A stretch of 25,643 nt of DNA. Source: Fonticula alba ATCC 38817. Its lineage: Eukaryota; Protista; Nucleariida. The notes beneath the pieces are model-generated. The model was not told the origin of the DNA. It did no database searches and worked only from the letters and a program-made list of their open reading frames with translations. The position numbers and the translations under genes were made by a program. The DNA lies in NCBI GenBank assembly GCA_000388065.2, contig KB932206.1; one strand, 5' to 3'. Positions 7,055 to 25,643 of the stretch are shown in pieces (within the stretch, counting starts at the first letter, position 1; each line of letters begins with the position of its first letter).

Positions 7055-7222
7055 TCAGAGCTTGGTGCGCGGCTCACCGGCATCGTCGGTGCCTCGGCGA
7101 ATGAGAGCAATCATGTCCTGCATCGACTGCTCGATGGCGTGCTTCAGCATGAAGGCGTCGGTGTCGCCGTTGGCCTGGTTGCTGGTCACCGAGATCCAGA
7201 GCTGGGCGATTGTCGTGCCCGC

Positions 7223-7277
<55 letters not shown>

Positions 7278-8989
7278 ACCCCCCCCCGGTCGTGCAGTTG
7301 CGGTCATTGGCGATGTTTGGCATGCGGTCAGTGCTTGACACCAAGGGCGTCGCCAGCGAGTGGCAGAGGGAGAGAGGGAGAGGAGGGGAGGCGGGGGACT
7401 TTCCCTGCCCGACCCGACCGAAAGAGGGGGCCCGCCACGCAGGGGCACAATGCGGCCCCCCCCCCCCCCCGAGGGTGCTGCGGGACACAAGCCAAAGAAA
7501 GGTACACAACGCACACTGTGATCGTTCAGGCCGTAGCAAACGCCATACCCCTCGGAGTACATGGGCGCGTAGCCACCGATGGAGTACTGGGCCGGAGACA
7601 GGTTGCTGGTACTGAGGAGGAAGCGCCCGGCCAGCGCCAAGATCGAGCCATCGGCCGGGGCAAGCAGGGCCGGCACCTCGGACAGCTCTCCCTGACTAAC
7701 CAGCTCCATGGCCAGAATGCGCAGGGCCAGCATGTGCCGGTCGATGGCGGTGCCGGTGACCGTCTCGATCAGCAGACTGCGATGCCGGCGCAAGGCTGCC
7801 TCCAGGAGCTGCAGGCGGTCGGCATCGGTGGCCCCCTCGTCCAGCATGGAGAGGCAGAACTTCCGGCTAGCCAGGGTCAGCGACCGGAGGACATCCGTCC
7901 GCCCATGTAGGAAGGCCCGGGTCATGCCACTCTCATAGACGCCGGCCGGCGGCCGGAGGGGGTGCGCCCGGAGGTACGCCAGTTGGATGGTCAGCTGCAT
8001 GAAGCCGTCGGCGGACACGCGCTTCTGCCGGAGCCAGTCACTGCCGAGAAGGTTGGTCTCCAGAGCGGCGTAGCGGAAGTTCCGGGTGTACTCGTCGACT
8101 GTGGCCTTGGCGGTGGCGAGGGCCTATGTGTGTGTGTGTGTGTGTGTGTGTATGTGAGCATGAGGGTATATGTGTACCCATGTGTGCGTGCGTGCGTGCG
8201 TGCGTGCGTGCGTGTATGCGTGTGTGCCAGGCTTTTTTTTTAAATAAAAAAACGCATGTTCGAGGGGGAAATGGTGAAGGTGTTGGGCGCGGATGACAGA
8301 GGCACAGGAAGGTGGGCCACGCACCTGGGAGATGGTCTCATCGATGTTCCAGCGGAGGAGCGCCGCCAGGGCATCGGAGGTGGAGGGCTCCGTGGCGTAG
8401 ATCCGCCCCTGCGACTCGAGGGCCAGAAGCTCCTCCCTCTCCTCGCTGTGCAGAGGATGGCACGCATGTCGGCCGGGCACATGTTAGAGTGGATCAGGGC
8501 CAAGGCGCCCAAGTGGCGAGAGCCGCAACAGGCCTGTCTCGGACGCACGCGCAATTGATGTAGCTCAGGGCGTTGTGGCAGAGGCTCGGGGCGTCGAGTG
8601 GCGTATGCTCGCACGCCGCGCCGACCTCGCCATCGGCACAGACCACCAGGTTCAGCGTGTGATCACACCAGCGGTTGTGGTTGGCACCCGTGGACAGGAG
8701 CACCCGCGAGCCAAGCTCCCCGCGAGTGGCCGGAGTGTAATCCAGGTCGAAGGACACCAGGAAGAGGCAGGTCTCCACCTGGTCCAGGGACCGGGCGTTC
8801 AGGCCACCCGGGTCCCGGGCCAGGAGATGGTCCCGAGCGTCGGTCCAAGTGTCCCGGTCAGCACCGGTCAGCAGGCCGATGGCCGGCTGAGAGCGGACGC
8901 TCTGAGCGAAGGAGATGAAAGAGTGGATCTTCCTGTGGGGCGTTCCGGGAAAGACGGAGTCAGAGCATGTCCTCATGGAGCGTGCGTGC

Positions 8990-9054
<65 letters not shown>

Positions 9055-10495
9055 GAGGTTTGTCTCCCACACCGGCACGCGGTCACATGCCTCGGCATGT
9101 CCCATGTCCGCCGGAGGATACGCACTTGTAGATGTCCAGGGGGGAGATGATCTTCCGGGAGGCGTCAAAGATCTCCAGACGGAACATCTGCCCGTCGATC
9201 ATGATGATGATGTGGTTGGTATCATGGACGGAGGTCTTGCGGATGGTGTCGGACCCGGGGCCGGGGATGCGGCAATTGGCGAAGGCGGAGCGGATCTGAT
9301 TCATGCAGAGTGGCTGCTCGCGCAGGGAGTCAATCGGGACATGCTCGCTTTGGCCGGATGGGGGTGCGGCATGTGCGCACAGCCAGCCGGAGCCGAGCAT
9401 ATGCATATGGGGGCATGCATGTGTGTGTGTGTGTGTGTGTGTGTGGGTGAGCAGGAAAAAAAAGGCCACTGGGGTATGTGGTAGCGGGGGGCTCCGTTGT
9501 GCCAAACGGCAGCAAGTGAGAAGGGGAGAAGCAACTCCCATGCAGGGCGAAAGGGGGAGAAAGGGCAAAGGGCCGAGCGGAGGCGCACCGGCGGAGGAGC
9601 TCCACGAATTCGGCGCCCTTGCGGATAACCAGCGAGGCACGGGCGATCGGGCAAACTCGGCCATCAGCGGTGCCCAGGCTGGCCGGGTGCCGGGGGAAAA
9701 TGATGAACCTGCAGCAGCGGCGTATGTCGGCCGAGACACGCCCATGGATGGAAGCGAAAGGAGGGGGGGGGGGTGTCAGCAAGGGCAGGCAGGAGCAGGG
9801 AGGCAGGGAGAGGGCACGGCCGGGGCACCCAGGCAGGGTCCCCATGGTGGACGCACCAGTTCGAGGTCGTTGGCAGCGGAGTGCGCCAGATGAGGTAGGC
9901 ATACTGCAGCCACCAGTCCTCGAGCCAGGACTTGTGTTGGGCCGGATCAGCGGCCGCCTTGGCATCGATGGCCTGGGCATGGGCTTGCAGGAGCCCCTGC
10001 AGTCGTTGGCCCAGCCCACCGGGGGCAAGGAATTGCGCCACATCCCGGCGCAGGGCCGCCATCTCGGCCGTGTCGTGGCCATCGGCGTCCAGGCCGAAGG
10101 GCTCGGCGTTGATGAGGACCTACAGGCCGTCGGGGGTCATGGTCAGCATATGGGGCAGCACAGCTAGGAGCAGAAGGGCAGGCGGGCCAAAGGGCGGAAG
10201 GGAGGAAATGGGCAGAGGGTGCAGGGGGGGAATATGGGAGGACCCCAGCGCGCGCGCGCGCGCGGGGGGGGGGGGGGGGGGGCAGGGGTAGACATACACG
10301 CTGGAGAGTCTTCTCAAGGGCCGGGACCGGCAGGGGCGGCAGCGAGGCCTGGTGCTTGAAGGTGGGTGGGATCCGGCCGTCGGTCGAGGGGCCCAGGAGA
10401 AGGCGAGCCAGGTCCATGTCGATCGGCTGGCCGTTGGCCTGGCGCTCGGAGAGCTCGAACCACTTGCTGGGGGAGTTCTTGAACCAGAAGGTCAT
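7055..10495 (-). CDS. Choline/carnitine O-acyltransferase family protein (~687 aa), probably peroxisomal
   Basis: Exons 10495-10298, 10119-9857, 9708-9589, 9347-9126, 8932-8549, 8445-8325, 8123-7515, 7201-7055; all phases consistent. Motifs: SLPPLPVPALEKTL, SWLEDWW, QPLCMNQ, NRWCDH, catalytic EHTPLDAP, DGFMQLTIQLAY, YESGMTRAFLHGRT, LSTS carnitine-binding motif, EGYGVCY; C-terminus PRTKL*. Confidence 0.95.
7224..7287. repeat. Poly-C (sense poly-G) homopolymer in the last intron of the carnitine acyltransferase
   Basis: C54-A-C9 on the + strand. Confidence 0.9.
8985..9053. repeat. (GT)n/(GTGC)n microsatellite in carnitine acyltransferase intron 4
   Basis: Seen directly; similar tracts at ~8127-8225 and ~9420-9446. 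Confidence 0.9.
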
Positions 10496-11917
10496 TGTTG
10501 CGGTGAGCCGATGCTCGGCGGAGGGGGAGGGGGAGAGAGAGGGGGAGAGGGGNNNNNNNNNNGGGGGGGGGGGAGGGGAGGGGAAGAAAGATGGGGTGCG
10601 GCAGGGGCGGCGGAGGTGCAGGTGGCGTGACAACCACTGGGGCCTGGCTCCCCGGGTGTGGGGCACCTTTTGAATGGAGACCCACAGTGGCCGGGGATCC
10701 GGCCCTGGGGCACCGATCGAGGCCCGCCTGGCAGATGGGCCCCAGCAGTTGCAGGGGGAGGGGGGGGGGGACCCCCGGCATGGGGGCGGACAGGCGGAGG
10801 GCGGGCGAGGCGTGCGCGCCGGTGTCCGAGATCGCGCCACTTCCCCCGGTGCCTGTGCCTTCTCCGGCGCTCAACAGGGGCGGCAAGGGGGGCGGGGGCT
10901 CGCCCGGGCTGACGCCTGCAGGTCGGCGAACAGCACCCCGGGGGCAAGCCGGCACACCTGCCCCCGGTGTTATGGGAAAGCGCCTGCCCTTTGTGGCGCG
11001 GCGTCTGTGTTGTGGACTCGGGGTCGGCCGGGGGGGGGGCCGGGCGGGAGGCGGGCAGGGGGAGAGACCGAGGGGCGCAGAGGAAGGGGTGCCCCGGGGC
11101 GGGTGAGGGGCGAGAGGAGGACGCGGGGGGAGGGGCCGGGGGGGGGGGGGGGGGGGGGGAGGGGGAATAAGTCGACCGCCAAGGNNNNNNNNNNNNNNNN
11201 NNNNNNNNNNNNNNNNNNNNNNNNNNNNNNNNNNNNNNNNNNNNNNNNNNNNNNNNNNNNNNNNNNNNNNNNNNNNNNGGGGGGGGGGGGGGGGAGGCTG
11301 GGGCAGCTCAGCTCCGGGCGACCATCCACCCCGAGGCTGGGGGAGTGTTGTGTTCCCCGCCCCCGTCGCCTCTCCGGTCCGAGGACGCCTTGGGAGGAAA
11401 CCCGGGCCAGCGCCTGGGAGGCATCGCAGGGGCACGGCCCCGCGCCGCAGCGATCGGACCGGGGCCAGGGCCGCATTAGACAGGTGGGCCTGCCACGGGC
11501 GGGTGTCTCTCTCTTGTGAAAGCGCCACGGCGAATTGGCGCCTGGGCCGGCGAACAGGGCGCGCCCGGGGGGGGGGGGGGGGGGGGGGGAGCATGAAAAT
11601 CGGGCGCACACACACACACGTCAGGCCCGACACCGGCCCACCGCTGGACACGCGCGCACGCCAGAATGGGCCAGCCTCCCGGGCGGCGGCGGGGGCCGCC
11701 CCCTTTTTATTTTTATTTAAAGACGCATGATCCAGACATGCTCAGGCGCCCTCGGGCGCCGCGGTCCCCGCCGCGAGTCACATGCATGCTGTGGGTCCGT
11801 CGTTTCGCCACCCGTCGGACTGGTGGGCGCGCGGCTTTTCAGCCGGGGCGCTCCACGATCGCGCGCCGGGGCCGACGCACCCCCCCCTGCCCGCCTCTAC
11901 CCTACCCATCCACCCTT

Positions 11918-11952
<35 letters not shown>

Positions 11953-12017
11953 TCCTCGTCCGCCTCATCGCCCCCCATCGCCCTCCATCGCCCCCTTCCC
12001 TTCCCCGCCTCCGGTCC

Positions 12018-14353
12018 ATGCTCTACGGGAACGCCCTGCCCGGCAACAAGCCCCGGTCCGGGCATCCGGCCATGCCGGCCGGGAACTACGTCACCCTTGA
12101 GCGCCTGCTCAACAGCCCGGAGCTCGAGGGCGCCATCCTGTCTTCGTATGTGGTGGAGCTTCCCTGGCTGATTGCCCATCTGCCGGGGGTCCAGCGCGGC
12201 GTGCCGGTGGTCCTGATCGCGCACCAGGGCGCCGGGACCCCGGCCGAGGCGACCTCCCTCCGCTGCGCCGAGTACCCCTCGATGCGCATCCTGCTGCCTG
12301 CGTGTGCCGGGCGCGGGCTCTTCCACGCGAAGTTCATGCTGCTCTTCTACCGGCATTGCATTCGGCTGGTGGTGTCCTCGGCCAATCTCACCTCGCAAGA
12401 CTGGACCGGCGGCGTGGAGCAGTTCCTCTACACGGAAACCTTCCCCAACCTGGCGGCGCCGGCCGGGGCTGCGGCCGCCGGGGCCGGCGGCTTCCCCCTG
12501 GCGGTGCCCCCTCCGCCGGGGACCCTCTGCGCGTGGGGCGGGGACCTCCTGCGCGTGGATCTAGCCGGGTTCCTGCGCGATCTCGACATCCCGGAGGGCG
12601 TGTGGCGCAAGCGCCTCGATGAGGCGGACATGCGCGGGGCCGCGGCGCGTCTGGTTGCCAGCATTCCCGGCACCCACCGGGACAATCGGTATGGGGTCCG
12701 GCGCCTGGCCGAGCTGGCGGCCCAGCTCCAGCCGGCCCAGCCGCCCGGGGCCCGGGTCACGCTCGAGTGTGTCACCGGGTCTCTCGGGGCTCTGTCGGCG
12801 GATTTCATCCAGCAATTCACCCAGCCCACCGAGAAGTGTCTCAACCGGGGCGAAGGGGCCGCCCGAGTGTCGGTCCGTGCGGAGGTTCTCTTTCCCCCCC
12901 GGGCGGATGTCGAGGACTCGGCCTTCGGCCCGGCCGCCGCCACCACCATCTGCCTGCAGCGGCGCTTGTTCCAAGCGCCGTCCTTCCGCCGGGATGTCCT
13001 CCGGCGGTATGCACGACGCTCTTCCGATCTAACCGGGGCGAAGGGGCCGCCCGAGTGTCGGTCCGTGCGGAGGTTCTCTTTCCCCCCCGGGCGGATGTCG
13101 AGGACTCGGCCTTCGGCCCGGCCGCCGCCACCACCATCTGCCTGCAGCGGCGCTTGTTCCAAGCGCCGTCCTTCCGCCGGGATGTCCTCCGGCGGTATGT
13201 GTCGCGTCGGGTGGTGGCCGGCCGGGGGCTCTTGAGCCATGCGAAGATCCTGCGCCTGCGTGTGGACCTCCCGGCCCCGGGGCCGGAGGAGGCGGCGCGG
13301 GCCCGGCGCGAGGCCACGGCCCGCGCGGTGGAGCGGCGCCTGGCCGGCGGCGATGCGCCACCCCCGGCAGCCCCTCGGCCTGCTGTCCCGGCTGGCGCCG
13401 GCCGGCGGATGTTCTACCGCGGCCGGTGGGTGAGCATGGATGCCTCGGATGTCGGGGCCCTGTATTCGGCCCTCGGGGTCGGGGTGGATGGTGCTATCCC
13501 GGTGGTTCGGCGCCGGACGAATGTCATCGAGTCGCCGTGCGTCTCCACCCCGGCCAGCGCCAGTGTCTTTGGCCCGCCGGCCTCCGTGTCGCCCTTTTCC
13601 CAGATCCGGAGCGATGGCACCCGGCCCGGCGAGGAGTCCTCCCAATCGGACGAGGAGGAGGCCGACGCCCATGGTGATGCTGATGCGGTGGTGGATCTGA
13701 CCGACTCGCCGCCGCGCCGTGCGCCCGGCAAGATTGTCGGCTCCTGGCAGGATCTCCTTGGCCCGGTGGATCGGAAGCGCTCGGCTGCTCCGCCGGCGGC
13801 CTTCCAGCCGGCCAAGCGGTCGCGTGCGGCCCTGGCCGCCGGTCCTTTGGCCTCCTCGACCGCGGGCCCCGCACCGGAGGCCGCCTCGGCGTCTCTCAAA
13901 CAGGCCGGCGATGATGGCACGGACGTTCACCCGGGGCCGGTTGTCTCCAGCTCCCTGTGGCTGTATGTCGGCTCGCACAACTTCACCCAGTCGGCCTGGG
14001 GCGCCTGCTCAACCTCCAAAGTTACAGGCGAGGTCCTTTCCACACGCATCGTCAATTACGAGCTCGGTGTTCTCTTGGCTGGTGGGCCCGCCCTGGACCG
14101 TACGTTGCGTCCTCCCTGCGCCCACTCGCCCCTCCTAGTGCCGCCTTTTCCGTGGCGACCTCCTTCCTCCTCTTCTTTTCTTCCTCTCTCTCCGTCCCTT
14201 CCTCTCTCTCTCTCTCTCTCTATCCTGACCCAATCACTGCCTCCTCACACACGTCCATCCGTAGGCGCCCTGCCATATGAGAGTCCGGCGCCGAAATACG
14301 ACCCCCAGGACACGCCCTGGTTCGGCCTCGAGGCTGGCGACACCTCTCCATAG
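12018..14353 (+). CDS. TDP1: Tyrosyl-DNA phosphodiesterase 1 (~660 aa after removing the artefactual 188-nt insert)
   Basis: First HKN motif FHAKFMLLFYRHCIRLVVSSANL (His 12324); RLVASIPG; TGSLG; second motif LSHAKIL (His 13238)...WLYVGSHNFTQSAWG; NYELGVL; terminal exon 14265-14353 ALPYESPAPKYDPQDTPW after intron 14100-14264. Deleting 13012-13199 joins the two supplied ORFs into one frame. Start ATG 12018 is the best candidate but is not proven. Confidence 0.93.
13012..13030 (+). other. Illumina TruSeq adapter remnant embedded in the assembly
   Basis: CACGACGCTCTTCCGATCT is the 3' end of the Illumina read-1 primer/adapter ACACTCTTTCCCTACACGACGCTCTTCCGATCT. It sits between two identical 169-bp copies (12843-13011 and 13031-13199). 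Confidence 0.97.
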
Positions 14354-14782: not shown

Positions 14783-17504
14783 TCATCCAAGACCGGAGTG
14801 ACCCACCGAGAGGACACTGAAAGCAAGGGTGTCCCGAGTGGTAGAAGGGGAGAGAGAGAGAGAGAGGGCGGGAAGAGAGACAGGATTGGCTCACGCCGAG
14901 TAGGCCTTTGTGTGAGCAATGAAGTAGAGGAAAACCACGGCCGGCTGGCCGATGATCAGCGTCGACCAGAAGAAGAGGCTCCCCAGGAGGGTCTTCTTCA
15001 TGCGGGCGGTGGCCACCACGGCCAGTGGCTGGGCCAGCATGGCCAGCATGGCGTATGGCGGGGCCTTGCCGATCAGGCCCAGGGGCACGACGGCCAGAGC
15101 CTCGTGCGCCAGAGCCGAGATGATGAAAGACAGCAGGCCGGCCAGGACGCGCGATGCCGCGCCGGACTCCTGCAGGGGGAGATACACATGGGCGACGATG
15201 AAGTTGTGCACCGGGCCATTCCAGCTGCGCCAGAAGTACGCCTTCCGAGTGGCAGGGGTGAGGGAGGGGGGGGGGGAGGGGGAATAAGTCGACCGCCAAG
15301 GAGAGGCACCTCCAGATGGAAGCAGGGGAAAAAAGGCCCAAGAAGAAAGGGCACAGCAGCAGGGAACATACCACGGTGGTGGCATTCCACCAGTCGGAGA
15401 AGAACTGCCGGTCCGAGAAGCGGAGCAGCTCAGAAGTCATGTTGAGGAAAACATGGAAGTAAGCATAGAAGCCCACCAGCCAGATGAGCATGTTCGGGAC
15501 CATGATATGGAGGATGCGCTGACGGGGTTGGAAGGAGTCAGGGCTTGAGCGGATTCGTGGCGGTGGTGGTGGTGGTGGGAGGGGGGCATGGGCAGGTGGC
15601 AAGAGGCGCGCCGGGGGCGCGCATGGGGCCGGATTTCCCCCCCCCCCCCCGGCAAAAAAGATGGCAAGGGGTAACACGCACGGCCGCCAGAGCCAGGTAG
15701 TCCCCCTGCTCGAAGGCCACGATGCTGCCCTGCAGGGCAGGCTGCATCAGCTGCAGGGCCAGGAAAACCTCCAGAGCGCAGAAGAAGAGGAACTCGACAA
15801 AGCGCAGCGCGACAAAGCTCCAGTTGATGGACTGGGTGCGAGGGAAGATCGGCTGGTAGCAAAGGGTCGGCGCCAGGGAGAAGTAAAAGGCATCCCCGAG
15901 GGTGAGATTCTTCGGGTAGTTATTCAGCTTGTCGGCCACGATCTGCGAATACTTGGTGTTGGTGGGATCAGTCTCGGCCATTTTGGCGGCCAAGCGGAGG
16001 CCATCGTTCACAGCACCGTACGACCAGAGTTTCTGGATAGCCCGGCAGGCAGAGCACCCCATCAAGGTCGAGAGAGAGAGAGAGAGAGAGGAGGGGGGGG
16101 GGAGGAGGGGGAGTCAGTGCACTTGCTCATTGAAAAGATCCCCGGGGCCAGCCAGAGCGCGACCAATGGCAGCCGGGGGTGGGCATTGCCAGGAAGAGGG
16201 GGAGAGAAAGAGAGGGGGCCAGACGAACCGCAGAGTGGGAAGCCATGATGATGATGTTCACCGCGTTGAAGCAGATGTTGGTGTCCCAGTTGACCATGGC
16301 CCAGGTGGTGAATGCCAGGCACGAGCAAGAGAGCAATGCACGCAGGGTGAAGAATAGCCCGGTGTGCAGGCGCCCGGTCTTCTCGTAGATGGAGTGAGCT
16401 GCGACGAGGGACATGCCAGCCCGGGCAATCGGCGGTGGTGGCGGCGGCGGCGGCGACGGCAGCAGCAGCAGCAGTAGCAGCAACAGTAGCAGCAGCAGCA
16501 GCAATAGCAGCAGCAGCAGCAATAGCAGCAGCAGCAGCAATAGCAGCAGCAGCAGCAATAGCAGCAGCAGCAGCAATAGCAGCAGCAATGGGGCGGGTAC
16601 ATGACCGGGGCGGGGGGTGGGAGGCATGTGAGAAGGCGAGGCCGAGCAGGACCCCCTCAAAGGCGGCCAGCAACAAAAGACGACACCCGAAGAGGAGAAT
16701 GGCACGCACCGGTCCGCTGGATCAGCCAGCCGGCCAGGACAAAGAGGTTGAAGGAGAAAAGGATTTGCACGGACGGCGATGCCAGCAGCCCCGGGATGTT
16801 GACCAGGTCCCGGGCGAAGTTGGTGAACAGGTACATGGGGGTCAGCCAGCCATGCGTGACGATCGAGTCCAGGGCGTCACGGAGGGCCAGCAGCGCGAAG
16901 CCGAGGATTGCCAGCCGGATCCAGCCCAGGTAGGAGGGCGGGTGCTGGCTGCGGGGCCCCGGCGCAGCCACTGGAGCTGGCTTGACGTCAGGCAGAGGCC
17001 GGCGGACGCTTGGCTTCACCCAGGCCTCCAGGAGGAAGGGCATCAAGGGGGCTTTCGGCGAGTGCCGGTGGAAGATCGTCAGCGAGGAGTCCGAAATCCG
17101 TGGCGAGCGGTTGGCTGGCGACGTCCTCCCGCTGGAGACCTTGTTGTGGCTGCCCTTGTCGGCGACCTTCCGCTGGGGATGGGCTGGTGCCTGGTCACCA
17201 AGGGAGGGCAGGGGGAGCAGGGGGGGGGGGAGGGAGAGAGAGGGAGAGGCAGGCAGGCAAACAGCCATGAGGGATAGAGAGTCAGACAGTGGGCCCCAGA
17301 GCAAGGTAAGGCAAGACAAGCGGCGGCGGCGGCGGGGGGGGGGGGGGGGGAGATCCGCTCCTCTCCCCCGTCCCCCCCCCCCTCTCCCCCGGGTCCCCTG
17401 GGGAGGAGGGCGGATGGGAAAGGGGAGGGAGGGAGAGAGGGAGGCGGAGTCACCTTCTTGTGTACCGTGGTGGTCGAGGCAGCCCCGGACTCGGAGACGG
17501 TCAT
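14783..17504 (-). CDS. DGAT1: Diacylglycerol O-acyltransferase 1 (MBOAT family, ~526 aa)
   Basis: Exons 17504-17454, 17190-16710, 16398-16229, 16032-15682, 15518-15372, 15241-14895 and probably 14816-14783 (stop at 14891 if the last intron is retained). Motifs: KLWSY, YPKNLTL, APTLCYQPIFPRT, IWLVGFYAYFHVFLN, SELLRFSDRQFFSDWWN, YFWRSWNGPVH, SALAHE (catalytic His), GQP. Confidence 0.93.
16461..16589. repeat. (AGC)n-AAT repeat with an 18-nt period in DGAT1 intron 2
   Basis: Repeated agcagcagcagcagcaat units, flanked by a (GGC/GGT)n tract. Confidence 0.9.
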
Positions 17505-20524: not shown

Positions 20525-21455
20525 NNNNNNNNNNNNNNNNNNNNNNNNNNNNNNNNNNNNNNNNNNNNNNNNNNNNNNNNNNNNNNNNNNNNNNNNNNNN
20601 NNNNNNNNNNNNNNNNNNNNNNNNNNNNNNNNNNNNNNNNNNNNNNNNNNNNNNNNNNNNNNNNNNNNNNNNNNNNNNNNNNNNNNNNNNNNNNNNNNNN
20701 NNNNNNNNNNNNNNNNNNNNNNNNNNNNNNNNNNNNNNNNNNNNNNNNNNNNNNNNNNNNNNNNNNNNNNNNNNNNNNNNNNNNNNNNNNNNNNNNNNNN
20801 NNNNNNNNNNNNNNNNNNNNNNNNNNNNNNNNNNNNNNNNNNNNNNNNNNNNNNNNNNNNNNNNNNNNNNNNNNNNNNNNNNNNNNNNNNNNNNNNNNNN
20901 NNNNNNNNNNNNNNNNNNNNNNNNNNNNNNNNNNNNNNNNNNNNNNNNNNNNNNNNNNNNNNNNNNNNNNNNNNNNNNNNNNNNNNNNNNNNNNNNNNNN
21001 NNNNNNNNNNNNNNNNNNNNNNNNNNNNNNNNNNNNNNNNNNNNNNNNNNNNNNNNNNNNNNNNNNNNNNNNNNNNNNNNNNNNNNNNNNNNNNNNNNNN
21101 NNNNNNNNNNNNNNNNNNNNNNNNNNNNNNNNNNNNNNNNNNNNNNNNNNNNNNNNNNNNNNNNNNNNNNNNNNNNNNNNNNNNNNNNNNNNNNNNNNNN
21201 NNNNNNNNNNNNNNNNNNNNNNNNNNNNNNNNNNNNNNNNNNNNNNNNNNNNNNNNNNNNNNNNNNNNNNNNNNNNNNNNNNNNNNNNNNNNNNNNNNNN
21301 NNNNNNNNNNNNNNNNNNNNNNNNNNNNNNNNNNNNNNNNNNNNNNNNNNNNNNNNNNNNNNNNNNNNNNNNNNNNNNNNNNNNNNNNNNNNNNNNNNNN
21401 NNNNNNNNNNNNNNNNNNNNNNNNNNNNNNNNNNNNNNNNNNNNNNNNNNNNNNN
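20525..21455. other. Assembly gap (931 N); further gaps at 4862-4975, 10553-10562, 11185-11278, 23025-23034, 24835-24844
   Basis: N runs; most gap edges abut G/C homopolymers. Confidence 0.99.
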
Positions 21456-21653
21456 GCGACCCGGCGTGCGTCCTCTTCCCGATGGGGGGTCCTGCGCCAT
21501 GCAGTTGATTGGTGGCTCGAGGCCGGGGCCGACTTCCTCACCACGGAGAATGGCTTCTCCGAGTTCACCAAGGCGTGCTGCCCTCTCCTGTGCTGCCTGC
21601 CCCCCCGTCCGACGGAAACCCGGCCCACTGACCGCTTGACTCTCGGCCTGCAG

Positions 21654-24600
21654 GCGCGAAGCAGCTTCTCTCCTCGACATCTCCCTTCCCAGTGGAGTAC
21701 CTCCAGCCATGGCATCTGCCCAACTACTCCGAGCTGCAGCCCGGGTCGGTCCTGTTCACCTTCGGCCGGACAGCCGTCGCGGAGAAGGTCATCCCCATGC
21801 ACCAGCTGGTACGACATTCTGCCGCTCGTTCGTGCACGCGCGCACGCACGCACGCACGCACAAACATGTCTGGTCCCGGGAGGCCAGTGGTCTCCTCTTG
21901 TTTGTGTAGCCCCCCCCCCCCCCCCCCCGCCGATCACTGATCCGTTACATGCAGTCCGAGCTCCCCGCAGAGTCCTACATCATTCGTGCCAACACCCATC
22001 TCCTGAATGACACGGTTGTGCTGGCTGGCGATGGCACGGCCACCGGCAAGTTTGCCAGCTCCCTGCTTGCGGCTGGCGTCGACCCCGAGGCCTCCCTCGG
22101 TGCTGCCTACGCCACTTACGGTATGACCTGGACGGCCCTCTGTCTGTCATGCTCCGGATGATGGCCCCAACTGACCTCCCTCCATCGTGTGGCCCTGGGG
22201 TGGGGGGAAATCCACCCTGCGGACAATCGCGCCAGCCATCCTCGAAAAGATCGGCTTTGCCTTCCTTCATCCCCTGGAGCCGGTCATCCCTACCAACTGG
22301 TCCATCCACCGGACCGTCGGTCTGAATGAGTCTCGTCAGCCGAACTGGGACACCCGCCTGTGGCATGGTATGCACATGGACAAGCACACGAACAACTGTG
22401 CACGCACATGGATATATTATATAGCGCGCGCACACACACACACACACACCGGCACATCCCTTGGCCTAATGGCCTCCGCCTCTCTCCTGCCCCGCTGACA
22501 TGTGCTTTCCCCTCTTCCCCTCTTCCCCTTGGCCCCCGGCCCCCGGAGCAAAGTCCATACCATGCATCCTCTCGAACTGACGGACATGCTGAATGGCTTC
22601 GACATCCCGCTGACCCGGACGCCGCTGGTTCCTCGGACAGCCAACACCACGCTCCCGGGGACCGGCGCGCGGCAGCTCCGCTACGAGGAGTCCTTCCACT
22701 CGATGCTCACCCGCGACTGGGAGCTCTTCCTGGAGTGGATCACGGCCAATCGGCAAAATGCCGTCGAGTGGGTGCTTCTCCTGTCGCCGGACTGGATGGA
22801 GTTCGGTCTGAGCCCCCTGCGCCAAGAGCGCCTGCGCCAGCTGGTTGACGCGTGCCACGGCTTCGGCATTGCCTGTGGCTTTGTACGTGCTTGTATTTGG
22901 GTGTCTGCTCCCCGGTCCTGGCGTCCTCCCCCCCTCCCCCCCTCGCCCTGGCCCCGTTTCCCCTTTCCCCCCCCCCCCCCCCCTCCCCCCCCCCACGGCT
23001 CCATCCCCTCGCCACACGCCCAACNNNNNNNNNNCCCCCACGGCTCCATCCCCTCGCCACACGCCCAACGTGCAGGATGTACCCATCGCTCTGATTCAGC
23101 AGCACTCCTTTACGATGATCGGTCGCCCCGAGGGCCGGAATGATGAGAACTATGACCCGGTCAAGAAGATGCGCGAAAACAGTGCGTCCACCTGTCCCAT
23201 TTCTTTTCCTCTCTCTCTCTCTACTCCTCTTCTTGTCTCTCTTCCTGCTGCCCCCTGACAACCAATGACCCCCCCCCCCCCCACCCCTGCTCCTGCGCCA
23301 TGCAGTTGATTGGTGGCTCGAGGCCGGGGCCGACTTCCTCACCACGGAGAATGGCTTCTCCGAGTTCACCAAGGGCAGCTGCACGACCATGCTCAACTGG
23401 ATGAACGAGGCAACTGCCTACTTGGCCGAGGCCGGCCGCTCGCTGCACATCAAGGTCCACATCTCCAAGAACCAGGTGTGCGAGGAGTTCCTCGACCCGG
23501 TCACCGGTCAGCCGCTGAACTTCAACTTCCTGCCGACTTTGGCCGACAAGCGCCTCGGCATCTTGCCCCACACGGTGCAGATGTACACCTATGGCGACCC
23601 GGCGTGCGTCCTCTTCCCGATGGGGGGCCGCTCCTCCTGTGTGCTTTTCCCTTTCTCCCCCCCCCCCCCTCTCGCGCCTCCGACACTCTCTCTCTCCCTG
23701 TCTCTTTTCTGTGTCCCGCTTCCTGGGTACTGACCTTCCCGCCGGGTCCCCATCTCCTCGCCCTGGCACCCGCCCTCACAGCCCCACCTATGCCCAGGAG
23801 AGCTTCGACTTCATGTATGACTTCATGTTCGAGGAGATGCGCAAGGGCGAGCGCGAGGTCGTCTTCTACCCGGAGACCGCCTATTGGATCACATACGACA
23901 TTCAGGTGCGTGTGCTGCCCCTCCCTCGCCCCCCTGGCATATTTGACCCCAATGGGAAACCCTCGCCAGATACCGAATGCTCACACCTCCCCCCTCCCCC
24001 TCCGATGGGTGCAGTCCCCCCTGTTCCTCCCCCTCTACGCGTGGAACCGTTTCCGCGACCTGCGTCTCATCGCTGAGAAGGAGGTTCGTGTCGCCGTCTC
24101 TCTCTCTCTCTCTGCCCCTCTCTCTCGCTCTCTCGAGCCCGCTCGTCACTATCAGGCTTGGCTTTTCTTTCCCCCTCCCCTCTGACCATCCTTCTCCTCC
24201 CCCCTGCCCCCCTGCCCCCCTGCCCCCGCTTGATCGCCGAGCAGAAGGAATTCAACACCAAGATCTCCGGCCAGATGATCTTCGAGTCCGGCTGGGAGTG
24301 GGGCTACTGGATCAACAATGTTGTGGCCGCGCGGGCGGTCTTCGATCCGCTGCTGCACATCAACAGCACCACTCTGGCTTTCCAGGAGCTCCTGCGCGAT
24401 GCTCTTTACGTGCTGGACTTCAAGCCACTCAATGCGGCCGGCGGCCTGCCGGAATTCTGGGCCGAGGCTCGGCGCCCGGTGGGCATTCCGCCCGTGGTGG
24501 ACGCCACCAATGCGGCTCCTGTGGTGGATCTCCTGTATCGGTACATCCTGGAGCAGGACAACCTCCTGGTCCAGGGGATTGTCAATGGCAAGCGCCCCTC

Positions 24601-24782
24601 GGACATCATCAAGCGCAATGGCATCGCCTACATCGAGGGCTGGGACACCTTCGCCGACTTCGGGGCCATGACCGATGGCTTCATCTCCACCCAACCCGTG
24701 CGCATGTCCCTGCTGGACTTCCGCCGCGATCCGCCGAAGACCGACAACCCGGACTATCTGTCCGAGATCCGGCCGCTGCTGG
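21654..24782 (+). CDS. Uncharacterised, probably secreted/lysosomal protein, glycoside-hydrolase-like (hexosaminidase-type domain 2 + TIM barrel); partial, ~638 aa visible
   Basis: Exons 21654-21808, 21955-22120, 22236-22367, 22554-22882, 23076-23181, 23306-23603, 23782-23905, 24015-24083, 24245(or 24242)-24782; all GT-AG and phase-consistent. Blocks: GAAYATYAILEKIGFAFLHP, RLWHVHTMHPLELT, NRQNAVEWVLL, GFDVPIALIQQH, DFLTTENGFSEF, DPAPTY, FYPETAYWITYD, QMIFESGWEWGYW. The 5' end is in the 20525-21455 gap; the 3' end is unresolved at the 24835 gap. The exon model is solid; the function is inferred. Confidence 0.8.
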
Positions 24783-25177
24783 GTGCGTCTTTCCGGCTCG
24801 GGCTTTCTCCCTCTCTCCCCCCCCCCCCCCCCCCNNNNNNNNNNGGGGGGGGGGGGGGGGCCGGGCCGGCAGAGAGATCGCACCCACGGGCTTTCGTCAG
24901 CCCCCGGCTAGATCTCCGGGACCGGCGCACGCATGACGCAAGTCGGGGGTCAATCACGCCGTGGTCACGCCCACATCTGCCAACTGTCCTGGGTGTTGTT
25001 ATTTTCCTCCAGGGGGCGGGTGAATTGAATGTCTGTTGTGTGTTGATGGCCCCGGGCCCGGCATGCGTGTTCTCCGGCTCTCCTCGTCCCCCTGGGGGGC
25101 CGCGGGCCGGGGGGCCGCGGGCGTCTGGCACGCCCGGAGAAGTGGGCTGCGCTTGACAGGCGCCCAAGAACGTGCCC

Positions 25178-25643
25178 TCAAAAGAGGGCGACTGACCTGC
25201 CACCGGCGAGCCCCAAAGAGCGAGCCCGCTGGTTTGGTCCGGTCAGGGAGGGGGGGGGGGAGATGGGCGGAACACCGAGTGCCATCTCTTTGGTCCTGTC
25301 CGAAAAGAAGGGGCCCGATAGGACGCCCCGCCGCTCTGCCGCCCGGCCGAGGGGGTGTGGGTGTTTTCCCGATCGCAGCCTCCTACCCCTGGGGGGGGGG
25401 GGGGGGGACTGGGCCGGGCGAATAGACGTACCTGACCCCCGGTGATCCCCGGCCTCCTTCCGGCTGGCGGGTGCGGGGCGACCGGGCCTCGATCGGTCTC
25501 TCGTGTCTGGGGCATCTCAGCGCCCCGGTCCTTGCTCCGCCCCTGCCCCTCGGGCGGGCCCAGAGGGCAGCAGGGCATTATTTTGGCCGCCGCGGCCGCG
25601 GCCAAACTCCAGCCATCTCCTGACACCGCCCGAGCAGCTCCCG
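25178..25643 (-). CDS. Possible last two exons of a minus-strand gene starting right of the window (or a spliced non-coding/UTR segment)
   Basis: Canonical intron 25431-25229 (CAG|GTACGT, poly-C, CTGAC branch, CAG). The upstream frame is open to the window edge and splices to RARSLGLAGGRSVALF*. The product is low-complexity and unrecognised. Confidence 0.3.

Follow-up and report, generated by a model that had tools for sequence, protein, structure and literature searches.

A predicted secreted glycoside hydrolase of an unclassified family in Fonticula alba

In glycoside hydrolases (GH) of clan GH-A, the acid/base residue follows strand 4 of the catalytic barrel and the nucleophile follows strand 7. 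Family GH185 was founded on a DUF4838 protein without the adjacent Asp-Glu pair, and the AlphaFold model of that protein is nearest to GH115 and GH84 (PMC10570127). Gln, His, Asp and Tyr form its active site, along with an Arg contributed by the C-terminal region (PMC10570127). New specificities in the GH20/67/84/115 fold class have yielded glycobiology reagents, GH185 being an example. Here we describe a gene in a 25,643-nucleotide stretch of contig KB932206.1 from Fonticula alba ATCC 38817 (assembly GCA_000388065.2); this whole stretch is called the window below. The gene, visible at positions 21654-24782 on the + strand, encodes 638 residues of what we think is fairly probably a secreted glycoside hydrolase of an unclassified family.

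Judging from the modelled fold, the most likely function is that of a stand-alone, probably exo-acting glycoside hydrolase. The enzyme would have three domains. The N-terminal one would be of alpha/beta structure (GH20b/GH67N type), the middle one a (beta/alpha)8 barrel that carries out catalysis, and the C-terminal one helical. Its catalytic Glu residues are likely to lie beyond strands 4 and 7 of the predicted barrel. A first-pass annotation of the window, made from its letters, had proposed an unclassified glycosidase-like family with a fold of the GH20/GH67/GH84 type. The predicted fold, the empty searches of family libraries and the distribution of the relatives support this proposal. The family is large, and is best described as one of secreted, glycosidase-like proteins that is unclassified within the GH20/67/84/115/138 structural group.

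Sequence family, distribution and predicted fold

A word-index search with the 638-residue protein returned 557 proteins of about 780-880 residues, none of which carries a Pfam domain. The closest relative, P0001, is 47% identical over 100% of the 638-residue fragment (E = 4.5e-173). The protein belongs to an unnamed family of ~820 residues. Its homology is full-length and colinear and it retains all invariant columns through the barrel, as checked over the fragment; the invariant residues of the C-terminal domain lie outside it. A profile search of 1.84 billion representatives gave 1,786 clusters (50% identity level) at E <= 1e-3 and 711 at E <= 1e-30. Among the matches listed, the 240 relatives that have a name are all called "hypothetical protein", apart from one evident misannotation. 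This is a Balamuthia mandrillaris protein (P0060, KAL6077698.1, 790 residues) labelled "60S ribosomal protein L11" in its source record. Two members are long fusions (P0129, 1500 residues, and P0131, 1728 residues) with ~670-860 additional N-terminal residues that have no Pfam match, and a third (P0160, 1069 residues) carries EF-hand domains C-terminal to the barrel.

Relatives are encoded in at least 556 bacterial species-level genomes. The best 80 bacterial loci were used for taxonomy and neighbourhood analysis. Most of them are from Myxococcota (Nannocystaceae, Polyangiaceae, Labilithrix, Sorangium, Myxococcaceae, Sandaracinaceae and Bradymonadaceae). Others are from Planctomycetota, including both Candidatus (Ca.) Uabimicrobium genomes, and from Bdellovibrionota, Oligoflexia and Silvanigrellales. 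Ketobacteraceae, Wallbacteria, Sericytochromatia and Binataceae are further carriers. Eukaryotic members occur in Balamuthia, Phalansterium, the malawimonad Gefionella, the choanoflagellate Salpingoeca helianthica, two chytrids and one metagenomic eukaryote. The first-pass annotation had placed similar motifs in amoebae and predatory bacteria. That distribution proved correct, as members were found in Balamuthia and Phalansterium on the one side and in Myxococcota, Bdellovibrionota and Ca. Uabimicrobium on the other.

In a crude neighbor-joining tree (without support values), the Fonticula protein joins P0001 and P0002 in one cluster of non-chytrid eukaryotes, and the chytrid pair forms a separate branch adjoining that cluster. 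A sister subfamily (P0259, P0263, P0265 and P0272-P0388) consists of likewise unannotated proteins of ~720 residues from Minicystis and Polyangiaceae. These proteins have no T-E where strand 4 ends, and a loop is shorter by two residues. They do retain the SEF-type Glu, as well as the four His and the Glu of strand 7.

The structure of the closest full-length homologue, P0001, was predicted with AlphaFold2 from a 94-sequence alignment and stands in for that of the Fonticula protein. The model has a predicted local distance difference test (pLDDT) score of 90.8 and a predicted template modelling score of 0.92. From the N-terminus it shows a signal peptide, then an alpha/beta domain, a (beta/alpha)8 barrel and finally some 300 residues of helical C-terminal domain. 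The layout first read from the letters of the window reappears in this model. The N-terminal domain ends in the G-x2-Y-x2-Y-x2-LE helix and the GFAFLHP strand, the eight strand-like blocks coincide residue for residue with the eight barrel strands, and a helical C-terminal domain comes after the barrel.

Foldseek comparison of the P0001 model with the PDB gave GH138, GH84, GH115, GH67 and GH20 structures with probability 1.0 (E = 5e-13 to 1e-10) at ~10% identity, in agreement with the suggested GH20/GH67/GH84-like layout of a domain 2 plus TIM barrel. The best global superpositions were those with GH115 and GH67, with template modelling (TM) scores of 0.47-0.57. A barrel-only fragment, P0169, was also modelled (pLDDT 87.8) to check whether the accessory domains alone drove these matches. 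GH84, GH67, GH20 and GH5 enzymes made up 40 of its best 50 matches, and the remainder include a few metal-dependent L-rhamnose isomerases and one branching enzyme. Amidohydrolases were absent from the best 50 Foldseek matches. A viral structure library gave a weak match to a phage hexosaminidase, and AP-endonuclease-2 and IolE-type barrels also appeared weakly.

The 638-residue protein had no match in Pfam-A (2025 models), NCBIfam release 20 or the PDB sequences to 2026 (phmmer). An hmmsearch of the PDB sequences with a 95-sequence family profile gave four chance matches only (E >= 0.39) and no solved structure, and the literature searched contained no characterised member. The view that the protein falls outside the families already characterised thus held against Pfam, NCBIfam, the PDB sequences and the literature. 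The family is unclassified as judged against these sources, with CAZy and dbCAN outside the comparison.

Some sub-threshold signals were seen when 34 members were compared with Pfam models. Glyco_hydro_67N occurred below threshold in 5 of the 34 (best E = 4e-4, 21 bits against a cut-off of 24.3). The GH67 67M and 67C models matched none of the 34, and the Fonticula protein had no match to any GH67 model. DUF4838 (PF16126) gave one sub-threshold match, in a divergent relative (15.9 bits against a cut-off of 26.6); it had no match in the Fonticula protein, and its gathering score was not reached. Precomputed PF16126 assignments were present on 4 of 120 sister-subfamily proteins only, and PF03648 is sporadic in the same subfamily, which therefore supplies precomputed weak sequence links to the GH67N and DUF4838 models. 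For GH20, the Fonticula protein had no Pfam match at E <= 1 and the 34 members had none at E <= 5. The GH115 and GH84 Pfam models gave no match.

Gene structure, conserved residues and proposed active site

Nine exons are spliced on the + strand between 21654 and 24782 to give a 1917-nucleotide coding sequence, which is stop-free over 638 residues when read from its third base. All eight introns are GT...AG introns of 109-193 nucleotides with CTGAC-like branch sites and C-rich tracts. In a tblastn comparison with P0001 (857 residues), every exon matches in colinear order, spanning P0001 residues 50-657. The first-pass annotation had listed a number of motifs for a frame of ~638 residues, and every one of them was located in the spliced protein: GAAYATYAILEKIGFAFLHP at residue 100, RLWHVHT at 147, NAVEWVLL at 219, IACGFDV at 256, DFLTTENGFSE at 305, LHIKVHI at 342, GILPHTVQ at 380, VVFYPETAYW at 421 and GQMIFESGWEW at 468.

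All features of the gene are on the + strand. The 3' end of the intron preceding the first visible exon (21574-21653) is unique sequence with a CACTGAC branch-like site and a CAG end, as read from the sequence. Exon A (21654-21808) starts in codon phase 2 and encodes residues 1-51, which belong to the N-terminal alpha/beta domain. Exon B (21955-22120, residues 53-106) continues this domain as far as the G-x2-Y-x2-Y helix. Exon C (22236-22367, residues 108-150) encodes LEKIGFAFLHP and the start of barrel strand 1, with R147 at 22355-22357. Exon D (22554-22882, residues 152-260) completes strand 1 and carries strands 2 (NAVEWVLL) and 3 (IACGF); it includes H152 (22556-22558), H155 (22565-22567), E158 and a lineage-specific loop insertion of 27 residues. 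After intron 4 (22883-23075), exon E (23076-23181, residues 262-295) contributes D261 and the near-invariant QQH (23097-23105) beyond strand 3.

Exon F (23306-23603, residues 297-394) encodes strands 4, 5 and 6 and the NFNFLP hairpin, with E310 at 23347-23349, the invariant E315 at 23362-23364, K345 and H347 at 23452-23460 and H384 at 23569-23571. Strand 7 lies in exon G (23782-23905, residues 396-436) together with the invariant E426 (23873-23875), Y429, W430 and D434. Exon H (24015-24083, residues 438-459) encodes the PLFLP loop and helix 7. Exon I (24245-24782, residues 461-638) encodes strand 8 (GQMIFESGWEW, with E477 and W481) and then the first part of the helical C-terminal domain. An alternative in-frame acceptor 3 nucleotides upstream of exon I (CAG|AAG) would insert one Gln. 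A 57-nucleotide in-frame GT..AG stretch within exon I was considered as a further intron but is doubtful; it has no pyrimidine tract and is far below the other introns in length, and the conclusions are unaffected by it.

Both ends of the gene are cut. On the 5' side, a 931-N assembly gap (20525-21455) conceals the 5' exon or exons, that is, the start codon, any signal peptide and the first strand and helix of the N-terminal domain. By homology ~46 N-terminal residues fall in this gap (the visible protein begins at P0001 residue ~50). At the edge of the gap, 21456-21573 on the + strand is a chimera of 34 nucleotides equal to 23594-23627 followed by 84 nucleotides equal to 23291-23374, the end of intron 5 and the start of exon 6 (blastn, 100%). 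We considered a tandem upstream copy of the gene. This reading was dropped because both pieces are identical to the exon 6 region with its flanking introns and are fused out of order, which indicates a misassembly.

On the 3' side, a GTGCGT donor and the start of the next intron (24783-24844, + strand) run into a 10-N gap at 24835-24844. This gap has a poly-C run on one side and poly-G on the other. The join may connect unrelated contigs, since the sequence beyond it has no homology to the rest of the gene; the C-terminal ~200 residues, with the family-invariant Arg, Tyr and Arg, were sought by homology in 24845-25643 and were not found there. Another 10-N gap, at 23025-23034 within intron 4, has identical 35-nucleotide copies on its two sides, an assembly artefact. 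The incompleteness of the gene at both ends is due to assembly gaps and not to mutation. What the locus holds is a genuine nuclear gene with introns, from a GC-rich eukaryote, and only these gaps cut it short.

Conservation was measured in ~250 representatives, with the numbering of the Fonticula protein. R147, H152, H155, E315, H347, H384, E426, Y429, W430 and D434 are conserved in at least 98.7% and are all present in the Fonticula protein. R147 opens strand 1, H152 and H155 are just beyond that strand, and E315 is five residues past strand 4. H347 is beyond strand 5, H384 is within strand 6 and E426 is directly past strand 7. E310, at the end of strand 4, is 96% conserved, and the QQH beyond strand 3, K345, E477 and W481 are slightly below the invariant set. 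In the C-terminal domain R699, Y763 and R779 (P0001 numbering) are near-invariant; they lie outside the fragment.

The absence of the adjacent Asp-Glu of GH20, and the placing of the acids in T-E-N-G-F-S-E, had been noted earlier and stand. Strand 4 reads DFLTTENGFSE, and the family consensus is T-E-x-G-x-S-E-F. The adjacent Asp-Asp that follows strand 4 in GH84 is also absent. Because both pairs are missing, the protein was assigned to none of the families that it resembles. E315 is the sole universal acid after strand 4, as E310 is replaced in the sister subfamily.

From these positions we propose a sugar pocket at the C-terminal face of the barrel. It would be lined by R147, H152/H155, the QQH at 268-270, H347, H384, Y429/W430 and W481. 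E315 would act as the acid, perhaps aided by E310, and E426 would be the nucleophile or base, with D434 nearby. The Arg, His, Tyr and Trp residues would hold the sugar. Such a mechanism would be analogous to that of clan GH-A. The many basic residues, and the fact that the nearest folds are those of uronidases and hexosaminidases, suggest that the substrate may be an acidic or N-acetylated sugar.

Secretion, alternative explanations and genomic context

Among 85 full-length members, 74 begin with a hydrophobic signal. A lipoprotein-like Cys is found in many of the bacterial proteins, and the signal peptides of the eukaryotic ones are classical. A missing signal peptide, which the first-pass annotation named as an observation that would speak against its proposal, is therefore not the rule in the family. 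Since the N-terminus of the Fonticula gene falls in the 931-N gap, the secretion of its product rests on homology, and we regard the product as probably secreted. The same annotation had counted at least six N-glycosylation sequons. Six are indeed present (NYS, NDT, NWS, NES, NTT and NST), but they are not enriched. In 5000 shuffles 3.2 +/- 1.6 sequons were obtained (p about 0.09), so the count is no higher than composition predicts and was rejected as evidence for secretion.

All flanking open reading frames (ORFs) of the 80 bacterial loci were clustered, and 111 immediate neighbours were included in a Pfam census. The only recurrent neighbours are Ser/Thr kinases and tetratricopeptide repeat proteins at random positions, which indicates that there is no operon or polysaccharide utilization locus. 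The gene is a stand-alone unit. An apparent cluster of antisense neighbours was rejected as noise from GC-rich ORFs. One bacterial member has a GDSL esterase on its upstream side and, directly downstream, a heparinase II/III-like lyase.

Several observations weigh against a glycoside hydrolase. The protein carries neither the GH20 (H-x-G-G-D-E) nor the GH84 (D-D) catalytic signature, nor that of another GH family, and one of the two candidate acids after strand 4, E310, is replaced in the sister subfamily. No conserved or carbohydrate-related neighbourhood was found among the 80 bacterial loci. The N- and C-termini of the gene are absent from the window, the membership of the pocket is deduced from the strand ends of a model, and hydrolase activity is something we infer for every member of the family. 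Finally, four near-invariant His with Glu and Asp at strand ends also resemble metal-dependent TIM barrels, and metal-dependent L-rhamnose isomerases are among the barrel-only matches (E = 3e-6, 14% identity). The protein could then be a metal-dependent hydrolase or isomerase on a GH-like scaffold (a deacetylase, amidase, phosphodiesterase or sugar isomerase), whose one or two metal ions would be coordinated by H150-x-H152, H155, H347 and H384 with E315, E426 and D434. The conserved order fits this idea, with an HxH closing strand 1, an acid beyond strand 4 and a His beyond each of strands 5 and 6; so do the weak AP-endonuclease-2 and IolE-type matches in the viral library. However, the top structural matches are overwhelmingly glycosidases, for the whole chain and for the barrel, without amidohydrolases in the best 50, and the rhamnose isomerase alignments have a root-mean-square deviation (RMSD) of about 10 Å. 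A GH20b/GH67N-type N-terminal domain with a helical C-terminal domain is the architecture of GH67, GH84, GH115 and GH20. In addition, clan GH-A glycosidases use no metal, and yet an Arg, two His, a Tyr, a Trp and two Glu are conserved in them. We consider the metal-dependent alternative, which is the main rival, unlikely.

Chemistry is not fixed by fold alone, and with the canonical catalytic pairs absent the protein might be a transglycosylase, phosphorylase or lyase, or a non-catalytic glycan binder derived from a glycosidase fold. The member next to the heparinase-like lyase is in keeping with such a role, but that lyase is a neighbour at 1 of the 80 loci and the structurally closest families are all hydrolases. 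The near-absolute conservation of charged residues at strand ends argues for catalysis and not for mere binding, and we judge a carbohydrate-active non-hydrolase improbable. There is a similarly small chance that a classification exists, for example as a recent CAZy family, or that the family has been published elsewhere; the gene would then be an unannotated member of something known. Neither a Pfam model nor a structure exists for several of the newer GH families, and the comparison covers Pfam, NCBIfam, the PDB and the literature and not CAZy or dbCAN. Against this, Pfam-A, NCBIfam and the PDB were empty for the single sequence (and the PDB also for the profile), the best structural neighbours in the PDB are ~10% identical, the relatives are named "hypothetical protein" and the literature was silent. 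That the gene is not real here, being a bacterial contaminant, a pseudogene or an assembly artefact, is very improbable indeed. The assembly is poor (the 931-N gap, the chimeric 118-nucleotide duplicate and the duplicated gap flanks) and most family members are bacterial. Yet the frame stays open through nine exons and eight spliceosomal introns, the family-invariant residues are kept, the GC content agrees with that of the neighbours, and the crude tree places the protein among other eukaryotic members. Contamination was set aside because the adjoining genes are intron-containing eukaryotic genes. A secreted glycoside hydrolase is thus the reading that we retain.

The taxa carrying the family suggest that such an enzyme digests microbial envelope or matrix glycans. 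A wider proposal is more speculative, and we hold it as a possibility only. The family may be a new GH family or may carry out a new, metal-assisted chemistry on a scaffold of the GH20/GH67/GH84 type. It could be an old digestive tool of eukaryotic phagotrophs (Amoebozoa, choanoflagellates, malawimonads and relatives) and of bacterial lineages that contain predators (Myxococcota, Bdellovibrionota and the engulfing Ca. Uabimicrobium), cleaving a linkage in bacterial envelope or matrix glycans that has no known enzyme family. If it is active as a glycosidase, the GH20/67/84/115 structural group would gain a new family. The family is unusually large and its host range is unusual, with hundreds of myxobacterial, planctomycete and bdellovibrio-like genomes and bacterivorous protists of several supergroups. 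This distribution makes it a testable candidate for the breakdown of prey or matrix glycans by predators and phagotrophs. As the family is concentrated in bacterial groups with known predators and in bacterivorous protists, expressing its members and screening them for substrates would be worthwhile. It could also act as a metagenomic marker gene for a predatory or phagotrophic lifestyle. Because the eukaryotic copies cluster in the crude tree, the family may inform the age of the set of digestive enzymes in phagotrophic eukaryotes.

The window consists of eukaryotic draft sequence, rich in GC (about 63-70%) and interrupted by N gaps, and the neighbours of the gene are ordinary eukaryotic housekeeping genes. 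Three intron-containing ones are a choline/carnitine O-acyltransferase (PF00755) at 7074-9168 on the - strand, the tyrosyl-DNA phosphodiesterase Tdp1 (PF06087) at 11727-14353 on the + strand and an MBOAT/DGAT1-like acyltransferase (PF03062) at 14891-15385 on the - strand. Antisense and downstream ORFs in 21980-25626 gave no Pfam match, and an Rfam search of the window gave no match. A perfect 169-nucleotide direct repeat (12843-13011 and 13031-13199, spacing 188 nucleotides) lies within Tdp1 and doubles a coding segment; it is probably one more product of the assembly and not biological. A long GCN-rich trinucleotide repeat, which reads as poly-Ala/Ile in several frames, and (CA)n microsatellites were seen at ~16435-16600 and ~8900-9500.

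Comparison with known enzymes

The GH67 and GH115 alpha-glucuronidases (1K9D/1MQR; 4C91, 5BY3 and 6NPS) share the succession of N-terminal alpha/beta domain, (beta/alpha)8 barrel and helical domain, and Glyco_hydro_67N is the only recurrent Pfam signal in the family, below threshold. Unlike these enzymes, the Fonticula protein is related at about 10% identity (10-11% for GH115), has another conserved set (four His, E315 and E426) and belongs to a family without xylan-related context. The taxa also differ, being protists and lineages known for predatory bacteria. The GH84 O-GlcNAcases and hyaluronidases and the GH20 beta-hexosaminidases have the same N-domain-plus-barrel arrangement and are top Foldseek matches for the whole chain and for the barrel. 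In them, too, strand 1 opens with an Arg and an acid follows strand 4. For GH20, the order of an N-terminal alpha/beta domain and then the barrel was found in 5A6B, 2EPO and 8BAL with probability 1.0. The Fonticula protein differs from both families in having T-T-E-N-G-F-S-E in place of the pair for substrate-assisted catalysis (D-D or H-x-G-G-D-E).

The GH138 alpha-galacturonidase (BT0997/BP0997, 6HZG/6HZF) gave the lowest E value with the full model (4.7e-13), and its family was also recently founded and recognised by structure. Identity is 10%, however, the RMSD exceeds 10 Å, the TM score is about 0.42 and there is no sequence relationship. GH138 genes sit in pectin-degradation loci of gut Bacteroides, whereas the genes of the present family stand alone.

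GH5 barrels of clan GH-A (6XSO and 5D9N) are among the barrel-only matches. The conserved set resembles the GH-A signature: an Arg in strand 1, a His, a Glu beyond strand 4, a His in strand 5, a Glu beyond strand 7 and a Trp in strand 8. The Fonticula protein lacks the N-E-P motif and has no sequence match to the clan, and clan GH-A enzymes lack the GH20b-like N-terminal domain and the helical C-terminal domain. In amidohydrolases strand 1 carries an HxH, strand 4 a bridging carboxylate or carbamate, strands 5 and 6 a His each and strand 8 an Asp. A linear pattern like theirs can be read in H150-x-H152, E310/E315, H347, H384 and E477; it is not accompanied by a Pfam or PDB sequence match or by an amidohydrolase among the best 50 structural matches.

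The DUF4838 families GH163 and GH185 differ from the present family in protein length, C-terminal domain and conserved motifs. They share with it a GH20-like fold without the Asp-Glu pair and offer a precedent of the same kind. Like GH185, the family has a conserved QQH, His, Glu and Tyr together with an invariant Arg in the C-terminal domain.

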